From Trichosphaerium sp. ATCC 40318 (taxonomy: Eukaryota; Protista; Tubulinea), in contig JALMLS010000304.1 in the NCBI GenBank assembly GCA_038496445.1, forward strand, positions 62,001 to 126,000: a stretch of DNA of 64,000 nt, read 5' to 3'. The translations under genes and the position numbers were made by a program. The notes below the pieces were generated by a model that saw nothing but the letters and a program-made list of their open reading frames with translations, ran no database searches and was not told the DNA's origin. Below are positions 1 to 26,615 of this stretch, piece after piece; positions within the stretch are counted from its first letter, which is position 1, and every line of letters begins with the position of its first letter.

Positions 1-569
1 CACAAAAGCAGCCAACGTTCAGGCTCAGGTGCGCGAACGTAAAGGCGGTATTTGCTACGTGTTGGTTCTATAATACTAGTCCGTTGGTAATGTGCACACG
101 TGTAGGGGTTATGAGCCTCAAACCACGTCCTAAATTGTATTGCCTTTCACTACGTGAGTAGTAGCTATTCTACGTAATAAAATAGGAGCGCACATAGGAA
201 GCTTTTTGAAAGAGTGGCGATTATTTTGCTGGCTCTCGTCGGCTATACAAAAAAACTGGACATGTCTATAAATCTATGTGGATGAAGCCACATACCTTGT
301 GCAATCAATTGCTGTGAATTCAGATGACCAACACCAGGTATATTCCTATAAGACCCCGTCATCTGGTGTGGTGCATCTAGTAGGGTTGTAGCAAACTGGG
401 AAATATTGAAACTTTGGAAATTAACTTTTTGATGTATAAGGAGGTATCGGGTACAGTTTTGTGGCCTAACATACAGTGTGGGTTTTATTTATTTACAATT
501 TTTTTTCAATTTGTTTTTTCTTCTTTTTTTCTGTTTTTGGTTTGTATACAAACCAAGCGTACAGAAAAA

Positions 570-16600: not shown

Positions 16601-16777
16601 ATACACTGTAATATGAAAAAGTCTACAATACTGCAAAAGCAATTTTTAGTTGAAAAAAAGTTCACTTTGAGCCACGTGATACGTTTCTATTTCGTTTTTT
16701 TGCGTAGTTTATCTTGAGCAAGGACGCAATGATTTGATTTATTAATACAAATGTTGTAGTGTACATTAATGCTTGTT

Positions 16778-19700
16778 TTATTCAAGTGCATCAGACTTGA
16801 TACTAAAAGTACAATTGGCACATACATTATGAAAAGAAGTACCAAAAGAACAAAAAGGTTCATATTCTACACCCATGTCCTTAGCCTTTTGTTTTGCAGT
16901 TTCCTCCCTCTCTCTTAGTTTTTTGAGTACTTTTTTGTACGTCCATTTTGGTCCATAAGGCATAAAGACATCATCATAACCTATAGAAGAAAAAATTAAG
17001 AAAAAAACCCAACAAAGATTGACTTGTGTTTGTACCTCCTTTGTCCCCTGATGACTTATCTCCTGTTTTTCTAGGTGTACCGATATCACCCTGGTTATAT
17101 TTAAAATGTAGAAAAATAGACCTCGCTAAAGAGCTAAGGTTATGGACAGCTTTGTATGAAGACACCATATCAGTTTGTTGCTTAGAATTTAGAAGTTTGG
17201 TTTTATCAAAGAGCAATGATCCAAATCCTTGGTTCACAATTAGATGAGATGCGATGGAATGAATCTCTGTAGTTACCTCTTTTACTATACTTATAGATCC
17301 TTTTATCTGTGGTAGAGGCTTTCTTCCCGACGTAATAAGTTACATCCAAAAAGTTCATTCTTGTGTTGAAAGCACGTAAAGCCCTTCATTATTTTAACCA
17401 GTTAGTCACCGTTTTAGATCACGTGCTACATACCTATTTGATACAAAAACAGATTCGCCATCATAAACAGCACATACACAATCAAGATCGTAAAATCGGA
17501 CTATGTCAGCTACAAAACAAAGGTCAACAAAAGCTGTTTCTTGTTGGCAAAAAATCTAATTTTTCTGAAAGTTACCTGGCGTTTTGTAGTTTCGTAGAAT
17601 GACTTGTACACATCTATGTGGGTATCTACACACATATCAGTATATGACAACATATTGGTGACGTACCCAAGGTAGAAAGAAACAGCAAATTTAGTGTGAA
17701 CTATCAGCATTTTACCATAGTTGTATTGCAGCTAGAATTTTAACAAGTCAAAAAAAAGGAACCAAACTTTAACGGGAGTACTCACAATGTCATGAATGCT
17801 ATTTAAAATATCGAAAGCAGTATCATCTGAGACACCAACAATATATAGATCAATATCTGAGTTTCCATAGTTACTCTTAATACTTAAGAACGCATTAGAT
17901 GTCATTGAAGAAGAATTACAGTGGGTTTTTTTGTGGAGCAATTGAGAAGTTTTTGAGTTGACACGTGATAAAAAAAAAAGCAAGTTTGCTATAGGAAGTC
18001 AAACGTTGTTTTATGATTGCTTTCCGGGACGGTTTATGAATGAGATTGCCCTCAAAACAAAGGAATGTTGGTAGTACTTACTCGTTAAATTCTTCAACAG
18101 GTGATGGTCTCATTAAACATGCTGATACTGAACCACCAGCAACATACACGTGATCCATTTCTAAGAACTTATCTACTAGACCATTTGTGAATTCTTCAAA
18201 ATTATTTCTAAACGTTGTAATGCTTTGAACAATAGAAGGTTCGCCTAGATCTCGAGTAAGCTTTTTTGGATACTTTCAGTTTTATCTTACCTTCCTCCCT
18301 CTCCTTCAAGTCACCTAACGCATTATCGGTAGGAAGTATAAGTACAGGGAGTAGCTTCTCATCAGATGAGAGCTCACGGAACTTGAACTTTTGATTGTCA
18401 TCAAACACGTTGATGAGTGTTTCTGTAAGAATAGACGTATCAGTGATAAATATTTATAACATAAAACTTAATAGCTTTTTTTTTACGCACTCTCGCGCCA
18501 TCTATTGTTCTCGATAGATGCATTAAGAACAGATTGCGTAATTAAGTCCTTAGTATTGTCTTGCCATAAGTATCCTTCATCTCGAATAGATAAAAGGTAA
18601 TCATAAGGTAACTTTGAAAGAACAAGAGATACAAGTTCTGACGATGTGATCTAGACAAAAACTCCGATAAGTTGCTATTCGCTGCTGTGTTTCGAGTTCA
18701 TTTAAACCAAGAAAGTACTAATTCTCTTGGATTTGGATCGAGAAAGCGCTGTTGCCTAGCCTAAAAGATAAAAATGTTTACCTCCATTAGATGATCAATG
18801 AAATCAGGTATTGATGATTTTGGTTCACGTGATATCTTCCTAGCAAGTTCAATAGCAAACTCAGCATTCTTTTCAGGATCATCATCTAGAACATCAACAA
18901 CATTAAAGTGTCCACATTTTCTGCCTGTTCGTATAGCTTCCATGATACGTTTTCTATGACCTTCAAAAAAAATTCAGTCACACAAATAGTTATAACACGT
19001 GATGGAGGACACTCTATTCATTACCTAATATAGACACCCCTAGATCCTTTCGCAGGTCCTTTTCAGTAATTGACGGCATAATAGATCCATAAACTTGATG
19101 TTCAATAAACTTTGAAGCGTATTGTTCAAACCCTAACTTAACGAGCCAACCTCTAACTTCCTTAAACAAGTGTAAGTTCACTGACTTGTCTTTTAAAAAG
19201 ACTATGACGTACCGAGCTCTTCTGAGGTAATGCATTATCCACAGCGATACGAGCACGCTTTGCTGGTCTGCCACTTTTGCTAACACGTGTAGCAAGAGAT
19301 TTGTATGGCACAAAAAAGTTATCTTTGCTAACAGTCTTTTTCTTCGGGTTTTGTTTACGCCAAGTTTCTGTTGGAGACGAAGTGTATGGGTACTTACGTT
19401 TCAGCTTGTGAACTTTAAATTTTGGTTTTGAGGGTGCACTGTTGTTGTTGAGTTTTGAAAACCAATCTTTGATAGAAGGACTATCAAACTCTAAGGTATA
19501 AGGAGCATGTTTTGTGTTAATGCTCTTTTGGCCGCGGAATTCGTTGACAATTGCATTCTTAACAGTTATCTCATCGCCAATAGATATAGGAGGGTCAGTT
19601 GCATCTGCATACCTATGAATGATTAAGTGAGTGGAGACTAATGACTGAGGAGATTGTACCATAATGTGAATTTAACGGAGTCGTTGTTTGAGTCAGAAAG

Positions 19701-22700
19701 GCGAAAGTCACGCTTTGGAAGAGGATTACCAGTTGAAGGAGCCATAATAACTTGAACATGACCAACACTTATCACTCTCGCTTTAAAACCTTTCCGTTAA
19801 AGAACAAACAAATCAAAATAATAAGTAAAAAAGGGAGAATAAAATGAGAATCAAAAGGATACTGACAAGACTATTGTGAGGTAACTTGAGAATCTCACTG
19901 AATGTCTGCATTGTGTACTGAGGTTTAGGAAATTGGTTTTGTTTATAAAATTCTTCTTCAAATAAAGAGTTGTGTCTCAGATGAAGCTCATAATCATGCT
20001 CGCTCAGTTGAACATATTTTTTATGATAGCATTTTACAAGGCAATTAGATACCTCATATACCTAAAATCAAACCTCGTTACACTTAAACAGGGAGTATTA
20101 TAAGCAATTACCTTTCCTCTATTAACAATCTTAAAGAACTTTTCAGCAACATCATTGTAAGCAACACAACGTATTCCATCTCTCTACCGAAAAAAAGTTA
20201 AAATAAAATTAAAACCACGTGGAGTTACGTTGGCGTCCATGAGCTCAAAATAAAACCAACAACCAGGCTTCTTGTGCTTCTTATCAACATCCCATCTATA
20301 AAGCTCTGATTTATAAATAACCCTAGCAGATACAACCCAAGAAGAAATATAAGGATTCAAACTCTTAATCGGAAAAAATTCTTCCGCTATGCTGGTATCG
20401 CTAGAGCTCATCTCATTAGAACTAGACAGCCAAGCGCTCTTAGCCTTCGGATTTTGTTTTTCTTCCTTCTCTTGATGTTCTTTTCTAGTATTTTGGCTTG
20501 ATGAACTGCCAAGGAAAAGAGGTTGAGAACCCATATCAAAAACACTAGGTCCTTCTTGTGACATTTCTTCATCAATTTCAACTTCATATTCTTCTTCAAC
20601 TTCTTCTTCGGCTTGCGCAATCAAGAAATCTTCGTCCATCATTGCGTCACTAGATCCTTGCTGAAGTAAAAGTAAGTGAGGAACGAGTTTGTGATGTTGT
20701 TGACATACACTGGAGAGCATCTTTTTTCTATCTTCTTCAGGTATTGGTATGTCTTGGTTGTCAGCGAAGTAAAAATCTTTTACAGGTACTTGTAAAAAAT
20801 CTGTTGAAGATGAAGCGATAGATATCTTTAAAGGTTTCTGTGAAGCACTTTTCTCCTCTTCTTCTTGTTCTTCATCTTTAGCTTGTTTATTATCAACTGT
20901 ATCAATAATATCATAGTCTTCCATAGCCTCATCCTCAGATTGGTATCCTTTAGCAAGTGTGAAGCAGTCTTCATCGAAACCACCTTAAAACAGCAACTGT
21001 CAAAAAAATTGAGAATCAAAAGATTGCTTTACCTGACTCCAATTCTTGGTCTACTCTGTAGCCATTGTTTGAGTCTGACAACGGATCTGATCCACTCAAT
21101 TTCTCCTCTGTAGAAGGTAATTTAATCTGAAAATCAGATAATGAAACGTTAGTCTCTTCAACAGGATCAACAATCATCTCATCCTTAACTACAAATAGTT
21201 TGTTAGAGATTTCTTCTTGGGATAGAAAAATAAAGTGTATTACTGTGACAAGAAGGTTCATCCACCATATCTTCGACATGATCCAAGTAATTATATGTAA
21301 ACTCGATTAGGTATCTCAATCTAAGGGCGAAACAGTAAGATACAACAAAGAGCCTTGCTTAAACCAAGCTACCTCTGTTGATTTTTATTGTATACTGCAT
21401 ATTCATCCTCAGAAAACGCAGATTTAATATAATCTGTTGACTTTACACCCTTCGCGCTATGGTAGTTTACAGGCGTATTAGACATACCATACTGAGCGGT
21501 AAAGTAATCCTAAAAACAAAAGAGTTAAGTAAATTGAAACAGGATTGAAGCATTCACCTTAATTTTGCCGAGAGCGACATCAGCCAAAGCCATAAAGTAA
21601 CTTCCATCTCTTGTACCAGAACAATAATTCCCTGCAGTAGTAGCTTTAGGTGCGAAGTATATACCAAGACCCAAAGATCCCTGTCAAAACCGTGAGGAAA
21701 AAGTACCACTAAAAATGTACGTACTTGATCTGTTCTTTGAGCTCCAATTGCTGTTGCATCACATGGTTTCAGCATACCACGTGATAATAAGCCAACCCAA
21801 TTTTCTAACAGAAACCAACATATTAAGCATGGACAAACGGACTAACATAAGCGATAGTACGTACCTACTTTACTTCCATGAAAAAGCAAATTAACATTAA
21901 AAATATCATTCGTAAAGTTTTTATAATCAGCTTCTCTTTTTATTTCAAAAATATTTAGCACTTCCAAAATGCCGTCATCATTTTCTTTAACTTTTGATAA
22001 AACTCTTTCATAATCAGGTGAATCCTATGAAGAAAAAGAAATGAGACTCTTGAAAACAAAAGAAAACAAAACAAGTACTTTGTTAAGCAACTTTATCTCG
22101 CAATTTAGGGCTCTGTATTTTGCCTCAGCTTCTAGTTCTTGAGTTGCATGTGCCCTAGGATTCATATCCATGCGTTGGCTCAACTAAAACAGTAGTTAAT
22201 ATTATTAAAGAGAATTCTTCGCTACCTTGATTAAGTCATTCATTACTTGGATAAGTTCTTGCTTCTCTTCCAACATTTGTGCGTTTCGGATTACGGCTGC
22301 ATCAACTTGAGCTTTTTCCTTTCCTATTCTATGAGGAATTACTGTATAAAAATCACTGGATAGCTTCTCTAGTTCAACTTCAGCTCCAGCTTGAAGAATG
22401 TGCGACTAATTCCAGCAAATGAGCAACAAAAAAGTTAACAGAAACTGAACTGTTACCTTGAGCACATCGCTAATTTGAGCTAGAACTTCTTCTCCTGATT
22501 TTAATTGAACATCTGTCAATACACCCAAAGGTGTTACAATTCCTGAAAAGATGTGAGCACCTATGAGACCAACAAGTTTCAAAAAAAGGTTATAAAACAA
22601 AAACATAAACATGCCTTGTGGTGTAATTTTTGCTCTAACTTTTGATACCATCAACTGAGTTGCCTCATCATACCTTTTTATAGAATAAATATCACTCAGA

Positions 22701-24037
22701 CGTTAAGATGTAACGCACAATTTTTCCACAAGTTCTTGAACCTCTGTGCGAAAAAAAAGATCAGTATTAACATAGGTTAATGAAGTATTACCTGGCGCCA
22801 AGTTCAATTCTTCAATCTCCTCCGGATCTTCGTAATCATCGCGCTTACGTTTGTTGGAAAATCCTAACTCTCCTCCAAGAATGTCCGTATGAGCTCCCTT
22901 ATTTTGCTCTTAGCACATTTGATTGTAAAAAAAAAACAAACTAGAACGCTTACTGCTTTAGAGCCAACATTGGATCGCTTTAATCCCACTATTCTATAAC
23001 CCTTCTTAGTACTGAGTTTATCCTGTAGGATGAGATCGAAAATGATCTACTAGATAGTTAAATGAACCGGTTGCAGGGTTTTTTTTTGTTTGTCTTTTTA
23101 TTACCTCGGCTTGTTTCTCGCTCTTTACGTATCGACAGTGCTTCGTCCCGAACTCACCATCTTCTGTAATGTCATCCGTGCATCCAAAATGTGTAAATAC
23201 GCGCCAGTAAGTTCTCATCAATTCTGTAGCTTTATGTATCTCCATAAAATAATATTTGTTTAAACCCTTCTGCAAGTTGGTACACTAAAAAAAAAGACAA
23301 AGTAAGCTTCATCGTTGCAAATTTTTTTTCGGTGCGCACGTGCATAGCCACGTTTTTAGTGATTATGTAGTCTTTTGGAAAATAAGGTGCAATGTCTTCT
23401 CCCCATAGATAAATACGCGTTAAACCAAAGTGAGCTGGCCTGTTTGATAAATTTTCGTCTATGCCTAATTTATCCAAACGTTATTTCCAGGAACACTCAA
23501 AACTATGTCTTACGCTCTTGATCACTTGTATCTGTACTATTGGGTTGTTGTTGATTTGTTTCTTTCGGCGTGGCCCGATTTACGCTGTAATCCATTGTCA
23601 TAGCGGCAAAGTAAGGTTTTTCAACACCTTTAACCAGAAAGTCCTCTTCTGAGAGTTTTTGCTGAAATAATTAGTTTGTAACGTGACATTTCAGTAGAAC
23701 GCACTCTGTGTATACAACAGTGGTATAGCCACTCTATGTTGACTAATTTGGCGCCATGTTTTTTTGCTCTGACAACTTTTGAAGAATTATTTATCACTTC
23801 AGTCTCTGTAGTTACCAAATGTGTTACCTAACGCATGTGAGAGGCGTCTACAAATGTAATTTTGGTCTATAAATTGTTCTGAAGATAAAACGTTACAAAC
23901 TCATCTAGGCGTACCTGACGCGTTACCAACGCATTATATTGGCCTCCGAACAGCCGAACAATATCTTTCTGCTGCAACAGTGTGGATTTGTCAAAAATGC
24001 CCGCTGTAGCGATGCAAACATCGCTAAGACAATTCAT
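16778..24037 (-). CDS. Large multidomain PARP: BRCT - WGR-like - PARP regulatory - PARP catalytic - acidic linker - two RPA70-like OB folds - SAM - pol-beta-superfamily nucleotidyltransferase-like domain
   Basis: BRCT (FGGQY, VTHLV, LVNIEWLYHC); WGR-like (NKYYFMEIH, RVFTHFG); regulatory (TPLGVLTDVQL, STDFYTVIPH); catalytic LLFHGS, GIFGLGIYFA, SEDEYAVY, QQRLRYLIEF; OB FPIKSLNPYISSWVVSARV and VKNAIVNEFRGQKSIN; SAM EVRGWLVKLGFEQYASKF..DLGVSILGHRKRI; NTase-like YVAGGSVSACL..SDIDLYIVG..YDLDCVCAVYDG. Confidence 0.8.
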
Positions 24038-25576
24038 TGCGCTTGCGCGAAGAGAAGTGGTGTTTTTAGAAATGGTTAGAAGAACTGTAACCACAAAACA
24101 GTTTAGAAATTTACAAAAAATTCAAAACGTAATTGTAAGAATTAGCGAGTCAAACAAGGCATGAAAACGCTTGGTAAATAATTTCACCGGTTGTGTGGGT
24201 ACACATCTGTACTGGTACTGTATTTTATCCATTCTCAAGAAAATTACAGGCGAATTTATTTTTGGATACAAAAATGCCTTTTGGTTGTTTTTGAGCCGAC
24301 ATAACGATAGAAACGTGGGCAATGATCTACAAGGTCTTGTCTCTTGAATTCCAATAGTAGCAAGTCTAAAGCTCACAATCCAACAAAACATTTCACATCG
24401 CTTTCTACTTACGTAAGGAGATGTACAGAATGAAATGAATTGATTCCGAAAAAACACGAAATGTTCCGAAAAAAACACGAAATATTCCGAAACATTCCGT
24501 GTTTTTACTGGTAAGTAGATTGCCCTGGACAACCACATCTTAACACAGTTGAAGCAAGAAATTTTGGTTGGTTTCCAAGAGCATTGCAGTGAGCAGCTGT
24601 TCTTGTTCCAAAAAGTGACATAGAAAGAATGAGAAGTGTCACTGAGACATAGTACAATCAGTGGTTCCTGATATGGTGATTTGACTTTGTTTCATTTAGC
24701 GTTGTATACACGACTTTCGTAGTTTCTGTGTGTTGGAAGTGCTCCTTGCTTGTGCTACAGCAAATCAAGATGGTTTTCCGTGCATAACGAGCACTTTCCA
24801 AGCGATTCAAAAGTGATTTGAAAGCGCTTTCTTTTCGCTTCATAACGCCTTGGTAGAAACGCTCTAGAATCACTTGGAAAGCGGTTTGAAAGTGATTTGA
24901 AAGTGATTGCAAAGTGATTGCCAAGCGCTTTTTTTCCTCAAAGCATCAGTATTGGTTGTAATACATCTGAGGTGCACTTGCGAAATAACAAAATTGCAAA
25001 AGGTGCACCTACAACATCAAGAGATAAAAAAACTCATGTAGAAATCGCTTTGGAATCACTTTCAAATCACTTTCAAACCGCTTTCCAAGTGATTCTAAGG
25101 TGTTTCTACCAAGGCGTTATGAAGCGAAAAGAAAGCGCTTTCAAATCAGTTTCGTATCACTTCCAAAGTGATTGTTTTGCACAAAAACCATCTTGATTTG
25201 CTGTAGCACAAGCAAGGAGCACGTCCAACACACAAAAACTACGAAAGTCGCGTGTACAACGTTAAGTGAAAAAAACTTCTCCACAAAACCTATCAGGAGT
25301 ACCAGTGATTTTACTATCTCAATGACATTTCTTTAGACAACTTCGCAAAATACTCGCAGTACTGACTCAGATTATCGTGATTGCAAAAAGCTGTTATCAA
25401 CTTCACTTTTTTGTTACGAACTGCGCTGCAATGCTCTTATAAACTACCTACTAAAAGACCTTGCTTCAACTATATGAGATATGGTGTAATGACTATATTC
25501 CGTACTGTACTTAAACACGCCTGTACCTTAATACATAGGAGATTCCTAGGCTAACCTACTTGCCGTTTATCTCCAT

Positions 25577-26615
25577 CAGGGCTGAAACTCAGCTAGGCAT
25601 TGCCTTAAAAAATGATGCATATTCCTAACATTTGGCATTAGATGGCAAAATCAAGGCATTTGCATTTGGCAATGCCCAATAAAATAAGGCATTTTTACAA
25701 AAAGGCAATGCCTTCATCAAAAAGGCATTGATACCAGGCATTTTTGGGCATCTTTTGGCATTGCATAAAATCAGGTAATGCCTTGTATTGCATTTTTTGG
25801 CATTGCATAAAATCAAGTAATGCCCTGTATTGCAAGTACTTTATGCCTTTATTATGCCTTATTTTTTTAAGCAATATATGCCTTGTATTTTAATTCATAT
25901 ATAAGGCATTGCCTATACTATATCATAGGACTGATCACATTAAGGAAGTGGTTTAAGGTAAGTAACAGTCAAACAACTTTTACACTTTTTTTTTCACATC
26001 ACCTACTGACGTTTTATATAGACAGGCACCTAGCGCTCTTAGTAATTCATGAAATTAGACGAAACCACCGCCAAACGAACCGCAGCACCCTATTTCACCT
26101 ACAACAGTAGTAGGAGTGAACTCCGCGATATTTCCAGGACCGCGGAATTCTAACACTACAAGGTAAGTTTTTTTTTTTTTTTTTTCTACACCATCTCATA
26201 TTTTCTTTAAGGTTTTTTCAAATGTGGACTTAGGAGTTTTGTGTATTGTATGTGTACTGTATTATAAAATAAATAATTGTGTTATTACCTGAAAATGCCC
26301 TGGTTTATTAGGCACTGTAGACTATGATAATGCTTCCTTTTTGCCTTTAAAATAAGGCATTGATGCATGAGTTATGCCCTAATTTGAAGGGCATAATTCC
26401 TAAAAATATGCAGGCAAAACCATTGCAATCTTGTGTACCAGATGCAAGCATTTTTCATCAAATATAAGGCATTTTTGGAGCAAAAAATAAGGCATTGCCC
26501 TGTATTTGCCTTTTTGAATGAGGCAAAAACTAGGCATTTTTGTAAAAAATAAGGCATTATTTGGATGAAAATGCCTAGGCATTGTCCAAAAATGCCTTGT
26601 TGAGTTTCAGCCCTG
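25577..26615. mobile_element. Non-autonomous hAT-like MITE (1039 bp)
   Basis: Perfect 15-bp TIR CAGGGCTGAAACTCA / TGAGTTTCAGCCCTG. Dense AGGCAT/ATGCCT subterminal motifs at both ends. No transposase and no TSD. Superfamily is inferred from the CAGGG ends only. Confidence 0.85.

Follow-up and report, generated by a model that had tools for sequence, protein, structure and literature searches.

The minus strand of a 64,000-nucleotide window from the protist Trichosphaerium sp. ATCC 40318 (contig JALMLS010000304.1, positions 62,001 to 126,000; all coordinates below are those of the window) carries, between positions 16778 and 24037, what is quite probably one intron-rich gene, whose predicted product of 1,725 residues would unite two enzymatic domains and a nucleic-acid-binding core in a single polypeptide. 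From its N-terminus to its C-terminus the predicted protein reads as BRCT, a degenerate WGR-like segment, a PARP helical domain, a PARP catalytic domain, an acidic linker, two OB folds, a basic linker, a SAM domain and a nucleotidyltransferase (NTase). This order had been proposed in an earlier note made from the letters alone, and it is borne out by Pfam and Protein Data Bank (PDB) matches for BRCT, PARP, OB and SAM and by a family hidden Markov model (HMM) for the NTase. The domain architecture is new, all component domains being already known. Joined to the mechanism that we infer for it, in which single-stranded DNA (ssDNA) would act as the trigger, the reading as a whole stands at about even chances.

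Gene model, transcription and the PARP-linker junction

The region is eukaryotic, with ~36% G+C, and its coding sequence, on the minus strand, is split into many short exons. The exon chain was assembled by hand from frame maps and splice-site enumeration, and the resulting model of 35 exons has consistent phases and zero internal stops over its 1,725 residues. Introns (n = 34) measure 41-199 nt, with a median of 52, and have GT-AG ends throughout, the sole exception being the GC-AG intron 22614-22543, which is 72 nt long, stop-free and keeps the frame whether removed or not. Three junctions are tentative, namely the 3' end of exon 23464-23340, intron 22718-22674 and the GC-AG intron itself. 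The gene and the introns verified by RNA are:

16778-24037, minus strand: whole predicted gene (35 exons, coding sequence of 5,175 nt, 1,725 residues, ~197 kDa), starting with the ATG at 24037 and ending with the stop codon 16780-16778
21372-21321, minus strand: RNA-verified intron inside the PARP catalytic domain
19212-19161, minus strand: RNA-verified intron leading from OB2 and the basic linker to SAM
18781-18651, minus strand: RNA-verified intron between the SAM exon and exon 1 of the C-terminal module
17035-16981, minus strand: RNA-verified intron between the penultimate and the last exon
16738-16743, minus strand: AATAAA poly(A)-type signal, ~40 nt past the stop codon

A codon-usage log-likelihood score, trained on the exons of this gene against its introns, is positive for every exon in the frame used, while the other two frames are negative for nearly all exons and fall below the used frame for all of them except the 50-nt exon 17625-17576; the introns, scored in their best frame, come to an average of -0.22 bits per codon. 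Since the exons code only in the frame used, and since the C-terminal exons are colinear with an independent family HMM (see below), the hand splice goes beyond what chance would give, and the earlier note's continuous frame thus holds over the whole stop-free model. The branch-point motif CTRAY was not discriminating, as it occurs in 8 of the 34 introns and in none of the four verified by RNA.

Transcription was evaluated with contigs assembled from one public RNA run, at a depth of 2-4. Four contigs each cross one intron, all of them with minus-strand GT..AG ends and spread over 4.6 kb; one contig is unbroken over 19212-19392, and another extends to 16759, beyond the stop codon. The gene is therefore transcribed and spliced as modelled wherever RNA data exist. 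RNA reaches into two of the intervals that the earlier note had singled out for a transcript check: in 19220-18950 a contig splices 19212-19161, joining OB2 and the linker to SAM, and in 18800-18100 a contig splices 18781-18651, joining SAM to the C-terminal module. The OB, SAM and NTase parts are in this way tied together by RNA. Over 16759-21487 the contigs differ from the window at 9 positions per ~775 aligned bases (~1.2%), so that RNA and assembly derive from different alleles or strains.

The PARP part is connected to the remainder by a short segment:

20984-21243, minus strand: PARP-to-rest link, made of intron 21243-21189 (55 nt, GTAATA..TAG), exon 21188-21033 and intron 21032-20984 (49 nt, GTAAAG..AAG)

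It is here that the claim of a single polypeptide, advanced in the earlier note, stands only in part, as the joins made in silico and the RNA contigs linking OB2 to SAM and SAM to the NTase sustain it, while no RNA joins the PARP to the rest over 21243-20984. The same segment leaves room for two adjacent genes on the same strand, or two main isoforms, one encoding BRCT-WGR-PARP and the other the acidic linker, OB-OB-SAM and the NTase from an ATG at 20924. Under this alternative the PARP protein would end just past LRYLIEF if intron 21243-21189 stays in, because the retained intron brings a TAA (about 21241) no more than two codons past the donor; a further stop near 21205 concerns only read-through in the frame of the preceding exon. 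The alternative also draws on the lack of any RNA contig over 21285-20984, and hence of any contig spanning the two PARP-linker introns, on an ATTAAA at 21126 together with the in-frame ATG at 20924, and on the fusion having been seen in no other genome.

Coding potential across the junction nonetheless points to continuity. Exons 21320-21244, 21188-21033 and 20983-20229 were held out of the training of the coding score, and the 156-nt linker exon 21188-21033 still reaches +28.8 bits in exactly the joining frame versus -12.5 and -21.9 in the other two, a score that was not reached in any of 20,000 shufflings of the exon's letters. A score of +15.3 bits, again in the joining frame, is obtained for the 19 codons preceding ATG 20924, and one of +137.6 bits for exon 20983-20229 as a whole. 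Both introns have canonical ends and modal lengths of 49-55 nt, and RNA confirms acceptors of the AAG type at other places in the gene. Considering canonical sites, typical lengths and the strong held-out coding signal, we regard a single gene as quite probable and two genes or isoforms as unlikely.

It is scarcely credible that this is a pseudogene in decay or a chimera of the assembly, with an open frame created artificially by permissive hand splicing. The three N-terminal junctions chosen among alternatives, the presence of one GC-AG intron and an RNA depth of merely 2-4 could be cited for it, but 35 exons run without a stop, each with a frame-specific coding signal, spliced RNA occurs at four sites over 4.6 kb, the ten C-terminal exons yield a full-length family domain, and the GC-AG intron, being stop-free and in frame, is unable to break the reading frame.

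The C-terminal Gad2-family nucleotidyltransferase module

The last part of the gene is made of ten exons:

16781-18650, minus strand: Gad2-family NTase module, residues 1312-1725 (413 aa, ten exons)
Exons 1-5, minus strand: 18650-18491, 18422-18291, 18244-18082, 17882-17786, 17731-17667
Exons 6-10, minus strand: 17625-17576, 17509-17434, 17383-17277, 17227-17036, 16980-16781

All motifs quoted in the earlier note were found on the minus strand where it had placed them, YVAGGS lying in exon 18244-18082, SDIDLY in exon 17882-17786 and YDLDCVCAVYDG in exon 17509-17434. Pfam scans of single pieces gave no match below 18650. A language-model atlas linked the YVAGGS exon to the Gad2 (PF26128), NTP_transf_6 and PolyA_pol (PF01743) families, and returned no signal for exon 17227-17036. 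A rotifer origin, suggested by an atlas cluster made up mostly of Rotifera, was dropped, as no rotifer relative came up. An exhaustive HMMER search of 1.8 billion proteins with the YVAGGS exon (53 residues, 18084-18242) gave 7 matches, of which P0007 and P0006 are true relatives. The other five were rejected as spurious, three being bacterial PKD-repeat proteins, one a low-complexity sequence, and one, P0002, lacking any BLAST match to the spliced model; the false PKD-repeat matches reach E 2e-7, which calls for caution with exon-sized queries.

P0007, from the mushroom Gymnopilus dilepis, contains the module twice (BLAST to the spliced model, 1e-31 and 6e-27), and led to several hundred proteins with a precomputed PF26128 tag, nearly all the named ones being fungal and the rest metagenome and Logan sequences. 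These proteins are either stand-alone (300-550 residues) or have the domain N-terminal to ankyrin repeats within proteins of ~1,800 residues. An HMM built locally from 95 proteins, almost all of them bearing the PF26128 tag, matches the spliced model with 178 bits (E~1e-51) over residues 1366-1718 (1376-1728 in an earlier numbering that was 10 residues longer), and the alignment is colinear over nine exon junctions, which are thereby independently validated. BLAST alignments to several members begin at ~1308-1315 in that longer numbering, further upstream than the HMM match, so that the first exon after SAM is assigned to the module as well. Regarding the identity of the family, PF26128 matches the member P0220 at E ≤ 1e-5, and another member matches a PHROG family named 'nucleotidyltransferase'.

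Intron 17883-18081 (199 nt) is the only long intron of the gene. It sits between GGS and SDxD, exactly where the NTase is 7 residues short of the family HMM, and it is possible that it hides a missed micro-exon.

At the columns conserved in ≥85% of the family members, the residue is identical in this protein at 31 of 58. A-G-G-S (1444-1447) and S-D-I-D (1471-1474) fall in invariant or near-invariant columns of the family, and the conserved residues that are kept comprise G1445, S1471, D1472, D1474, D1541, D1543 and D1550-G1551, with D1541 and D1543, judged by their alignment columns, as conserved candidates for the third catalytic carboxylate.

The fold was approached through a family member, the fungal relative P0220 (~29% identical), modelled by AlphaFold on an alignment of 66 members with a pLDDT of 89 and a pTM of 0.89. 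The earlier note had staked its reading on whether the C-terminal domain models as an NTase fold, which at family level it does. Foldseek against PDB and Swiss-Prot models returned at the top only NTases of pol-beta type, comprising CdnE, TENT5, TUTases, CCA-adding enzymes, OAS and GLD-2, with weak scores (best E 3e-3, TM 0.25-0.3; the top match, CdnE, TM 0.19-0.25). VIA-align gave NTases for all 32 best chains, headed by the class-II A-/CCA-adding enzyme 3wfo (Z 9.4, root-mean-square deviation of 3.5 Å over 177 residues); the class-II A-/CCA-adding enzymes range down to Z 7.3 (3h39, Z 7.5), and they are followed by the bacterial poly(A) polymerase 3aql (Z 7.2), TENT5C (Z 6.9) and CD-NTases at about Z 3. 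Similarity to the CD-NTases and the cGAS-OAS group did not, in this comparison, rise above that to other NTases (about Z 3 vs 9.4). The C-terminal module is thus predicted, on sequence and on the model of its relative, to be a pol-beta-superfamily NTase of the Gad2 family with GGS and DxD intact. As for its product, the earlier note had envisaged either the addition of nucleotides or a nucleotide signal; the pol-beta type stands, while the signal is weakened because the nearest structures are 3'-end tailing enzymes and not cGAS-like synthases.

Class-II CCA/A-adding enzymes and the bacterial poly(A) polymerase are the best structural neighbours of the Gad2-family model, yet differ from it in several respects. 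GGS and DxD are ~25-30 residues apart, compared with ~10 for CCA enzymes; the subdomains at the N- and C-terminus are different, and no tRNA-binding body or tail was identified; and no match at sequence level connects them to the family. The family profile likewise had no match among PDB sequences or NCBIfam.

A module that keeps the NTase fold to bind a nucleotide, a nucleic acid or a partner with no transfer, that is, a pseudo-enzyme, appears distinctly unlikely. It would account for the 27 of 58 conserved columns that differ, including the near-invariant Arg of the family, which is His1507 here, and the whole RRSPSYE motif, read here as KKASTTD; it is also in line with a similarity to the family of just ~29%. 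Against it, the protein retains the GGS Gly, the two Asp of SDxD, D1541/D1543 and D1550-G1551, and many substitutions are of a conservative kind (R→K, E→D, F→Y, L→V/I). Given His1507 and KKASTTD, substrate or activity may differ.

The family takes its name from Gad2, a ~400-residue phage protein that cancels Gabija defence; from AlphaFold, it was predicted to be an NTase (bioRxiv 10.1101/2023.05.01.538930). A tblastn search of 50,697 phage genomes with a eukaryotic family member gave no match. Fungal PF26128 members are homologous to the module along the whole domain at ~25-33% identity, but whereas in fungi the domain stands alone or N-terminal to ankyrin repeats, here it is C-terminal, after PARP-OB-OB-SAM. 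More than a dozen of the best PF26128 matches belong to Gymnopilus dilepis (P0007, P0008, P0009, P0127-P0135), one protein of this species combining two copies of the module with WD40; this set is a lineage-specific expansion of the kind typical of conflict-related gene families. A 182-residue open frame on a 1.8 kb ENA metagenome scaffold (L001:69-617) is 38% identical to the GGS-SDxD region, over which none of the other relatives found comes closer.

The PARP third, the OB-SAM middle and the upstream repeats

The N-terminal and middle parts of the predicted protein are distributed as follows:

23620-24037, minus strand: BRCT, residues 1 to ~95 (exons 24037-23915, 23827-23705 and the start of 23661-23514)
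22954-23464, minus strand: WGR-like segment, residues 132-256 (exons 23464-23340, 23284-23105, 23022-22954)
22079-22897, minus strand: PARP helical (regulatory) domain, residues ~291-443 (six exons, 22897-22792, 22743-22719, 22673-22615, 22542-22457, 22405-22226, 22183-22079)
21244-22024, minus strand: PARP catalytic (ART) domain, residues 444-622, with H492, Y531 and E600 (exons 22024-21865, 21804-21725, 21680-21558, 21509-21373, 21320-21244)
20394-20983 plus exon 21188-21033, minus strand: acidic linker, residues 623-884 (66 Asp + Glu, isoelectric point 4.1)
19951-20393, minus strand: OB1, RPA70 DBD-A-like, residues ~885-1000 (end of exon 20983-20229, exon 20183-20112, first part of 20061-19863)
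19445-19950, minus strand: OB2, RPA70 DBD-B-like, residues ~1001-1128 (end of exon 20061-19863, exon 19789-19660, start of 19612-19213)
19213-19444, minus strand: basic linker, residues 1129-1206 (78 residues, isoelectric point 11.0), with KRK, KKK and KRAR clusters resembling a nuclear localization signal
18890-19160, minus strand: SAM, residues 1207-1275 (exon 19160-19025 and first part of 18960-18782)

Pfam scans were made on single open exon pieces, each against the cut-off of its profile. BRCT scores 22.4 bits (cut-off 21.3) from the second half of the domain alone, and the choice of a 43-nt intron gives the end W...EEDFL typical of BRCT. In a first model this intron and one of 45 nt had been drawn with 34 and 24 nt, lengths that were discarded because the replacements share a common GTGCGT donor and improve the BRCT and helical-domain alignments. 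The helical domain is recognized on one exon by PARP_reg (PF02877; 39.3 bits, cut-off 26.8, E 8e-10), its best PDB relatives being PARP3 and PARP1, and the catalytic domain by PARP (PF00644) on two exons, 21680-21558 (31.5 bits, cut-off 26.7) and 22024-21865 (23.3 bits). The catalytic triad, which the earlier note had read as FHGS, GIYFA and DEY, is confirmed to be intact by alignment with solved PARP2 and PARP4: H492 lies in LLFHGSK, aligned with LLWHGSR of PARP2, Y531 in GLGIYFAP, aligned with GSGIYFSD of PARP4, and E600 in EDEYAVYNKNQ, aligned with DDEFVVYKTNQ of PARP4. The end of the domain, QQR|LRYLIEF, straddles the RNA-verified intron 21372-21321. As judged from these alignments, the N-terminal third is assigned to the DNA-repair/PARP4 branch of PARPs, with its His-Tyr-Glu triad preserved.

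The WGR-like segment, located between BRCT and the helical domain, shows the pattern NKYYFMEI...Y.VFTHFG...KKGY, and in the language-model atlas 73 of its 100 matches are WGR clusters, the best at 0.87 with 179 shared features. The WGR of the earlier note is therefore kept as an atlas lead, to which profile methods add nothing, as neither Pfam nor the PDB-sequence search matched the segment, and the motif that names the domain reads H-F-G, making it at best a degenerate WGR. PARP4 consists, in the standard annotation, of BRCT, helical and catalytic domains with no WGR, so the attribution of a BRCT-WGR-catalytic layout to PARP4 in the earlier note was wrong.

With both PARP4 and the PARP1-3 clade this protein shares the helical domain, the ART with its His-Tyr-Glu triad and an N-terminal BRCT. 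PARP4 (8swy) is the best match of two of the catalytic exons and PARP2 is matched by another, the helical domain being matched to PARP3 and PARP1. Known PARPs of the clade end at the catalytic domain, or continue into VIT and vWA in the case of PARP4, whereas here ~1,100 extra residues of OB-OB-SAM-NTase follow; VIT and vWA, which are listed next to BRCT as PARP4 domains (PMC4245714), are not present, downstream Pfam scans giving OB and SAM only and the remainder being the NTase module. The Trp-Gly-Arg of DNA-dependent PARPs is lost in the putative WGR-like domain, and the zinc fingers of PARP1 are not found in this protein.

The acidic linker, of 262 residues, is probably disordered. After it, OB1 matches RPA70 in the PDB-sequence search, with 1jmc at E 2.4e-4 followed by 1fgu, 8rk2 and yeast Rfa1 (1ynx), the alignment beginning at the first strand of DBD-A. 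OB2 is matched by Pfam REPA_OB_2 on one 52-residue piece (E 3.5e-5), where its 24.1 bits lie below the cut-off of 27; exon 20061-19863 had no PDB match, and relatives of the OB exons were found neither in a word-indexed protein search nor in a metagenome scan. The tandem is in A-B order as in RPA70, but in the RNA-supported model SAM and NTase come after OB2 in place of the zinc-containing DBD-C, and RPA70N is missing. Thus, with RPA70N and the DBD-C zinc ribbon lacking, the protein is not an RPA70 orthologue. SAM is recognized by both SAM_2 (38.8 bits, cut-off 20.5) and SAM_1 (37.8 bits, cut-off 23). Tankyrase (ankyrin-SAM-PARP) also combines SAM and a PARP catalytic domain in one polypeptide, and there SAM polymerisation supports PARP function; its order, however, is SAM then PARP, while here PARP comes first and SAM later, and it has ankyrin repeats and no helical domain, while here a helical domain, OB folds and an NTase are present without ankyrin.

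No zinc-finger exons were seen upstream of the gene, where a palindromic element of ~590 bp lies instead (24686-25275), ~650 nt upstream of the start codon. Its outer arms (24686-24777 and 25184-25275) are 92% complementary and its inner arms (24775-24935 and 25027-25187) 86%, and they are made of 11-nt periodic repeats resembling GAAAGTGATTT. Further out, short direct repeats at 25596-25831 and 26330-26490, including a 42-nt tandem pair 93% identical, are composed of small hairpin-like units of the types GGCATTGCC and AAGGCATT.

Proposed function, competing readings and meaning for the Gad2 family

The combination was not found in any protein, locus or paper within reach. Neither the best 120 long nor the best 120 short relatives of the module carry anything besides PF26128 other than ankyrin or WD40, without PARP, OB or SAM; 80 metagenomic loci with the NTase domain (0.84 Mb with flanks) contain no PARP, OB or SAM coding; a PARP survey (PMC4245714) does not mention a fusion to OB, SAM or NTase; and a full-text literature search yielded no paper on this domain combination. 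The view of the earlier note that the architecture had not been described is thus sustained among the relatives, metagenomic loci and literature searched.

In the mechanism that we propose, the tandem OB folds would bind ssDNA, such as that of resected breaks, gaps, or replication or viral intermediates, in a protein that the basic linker would direct to the nucleus. The 262-residue acidic linker could mimic DNA and hold the OB folds or the PARP closed until DNA displaces it, and SAM might cluster the molecules on DNA. Once released, the PARP, with its regulatory helical domain, would ADP-ribosylate itself, neighbouring proteins or DNA ends, and the NTase would add nucleotides, template-free, to a nearby 3' end. 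As CCA/A-adding enzymes and poly(A) polymerases are structurally closest, we favour template-independent addition over synthesis of a cyclic signal. The layout of the PARP favours a setting in repair, and the phage anti-defence role and fungal ankyrin fusions of the family favour one in conflict; repair is placed slightly ahead of defence against viruses or mobile elements.

The conflict setting can be taken further, into a sensor of innate immunity in which ssDNA of viruses or transposons is detected by the OB folds, assembly proceeds through SAM, the PARP uses up NAD+ or modifies targets, and the NTase makes a signal or disables the nucleic acid of the invader. This remains a doubtful reading, albeit a serious competitor, since the one PF26128 member that has been studied is a phage protein countering defence, the fungal domain is fused to ankyrin arrays and strongly expanded within single species, and CD-NTases and OAS are among the Foldseek matches. 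Nonetheless, the PARP half has the BRCT, WGR-like and helical layout of DNA-break PARPs, CCA-adding enzymes and poly(A) polymerases are, by Z-score, much closer to the NTase than CD-NTases are (9.4 vs ~3), and no sign of hypervariability was seen, although no paralogue family was examined.

Returning to the ssDNA-triggered protein with two enzymatic outputs, several observations weigh against it, in addition to the RNA gap and the ATTAAA and ATG signals at the PARP-linker junction, the degenerate WGR-like segment, the sub-threshold OB2 score, and the His1507 and KKASTTD replacements: (i) the evidence for the NTase fold comes from a fungal relative only ~29% identical, and its Z and TM scores are moderate, (ii) reviews of 2026 give no mechanism for Gad2, and no PF26128 member has a known biochemical activity, (iii) the 9 differences between RNA and genome divide into 4 synonymous and 5 non-synonymous ones, which gives no clear sign of constraint, and (iv) limited searches, in protist data that are thin, turned up neither an orthologue nor another case of the fusion, so that conservation offers no argument for it.

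A bolder version, in which the two enzymes of a coupled ssDNA sensor act on each other's products or a nucleotide signal is produced upon ssDNA binding, is a long shot. The Gad2-type transferase could, for example, extend or cap ADP-ribose, poly(ADP-ribose) or ADP-ribosylated DNA ends.

Few clues to what an uncharacterised enzyme does are as good as its fusions, and for the Gad2 family (PF26128), with its thousands of phage and fungal members, no substrate is known. A member tethered to an RPA-type ssDNA-binding pair and to a PARP of DNA-break type points to DNA ends or ssDNA. If the single gene is real, it would provide a direct test system for the cross-talk between ADP-ribosylation and nucleotide addition, and, should the coupled sensor prove true, a first hint at a substrate would be available for the entire Gad2 family, and with it a hint at the way in which phage Gad2 overcomes the DNA-cutting Gabija system.

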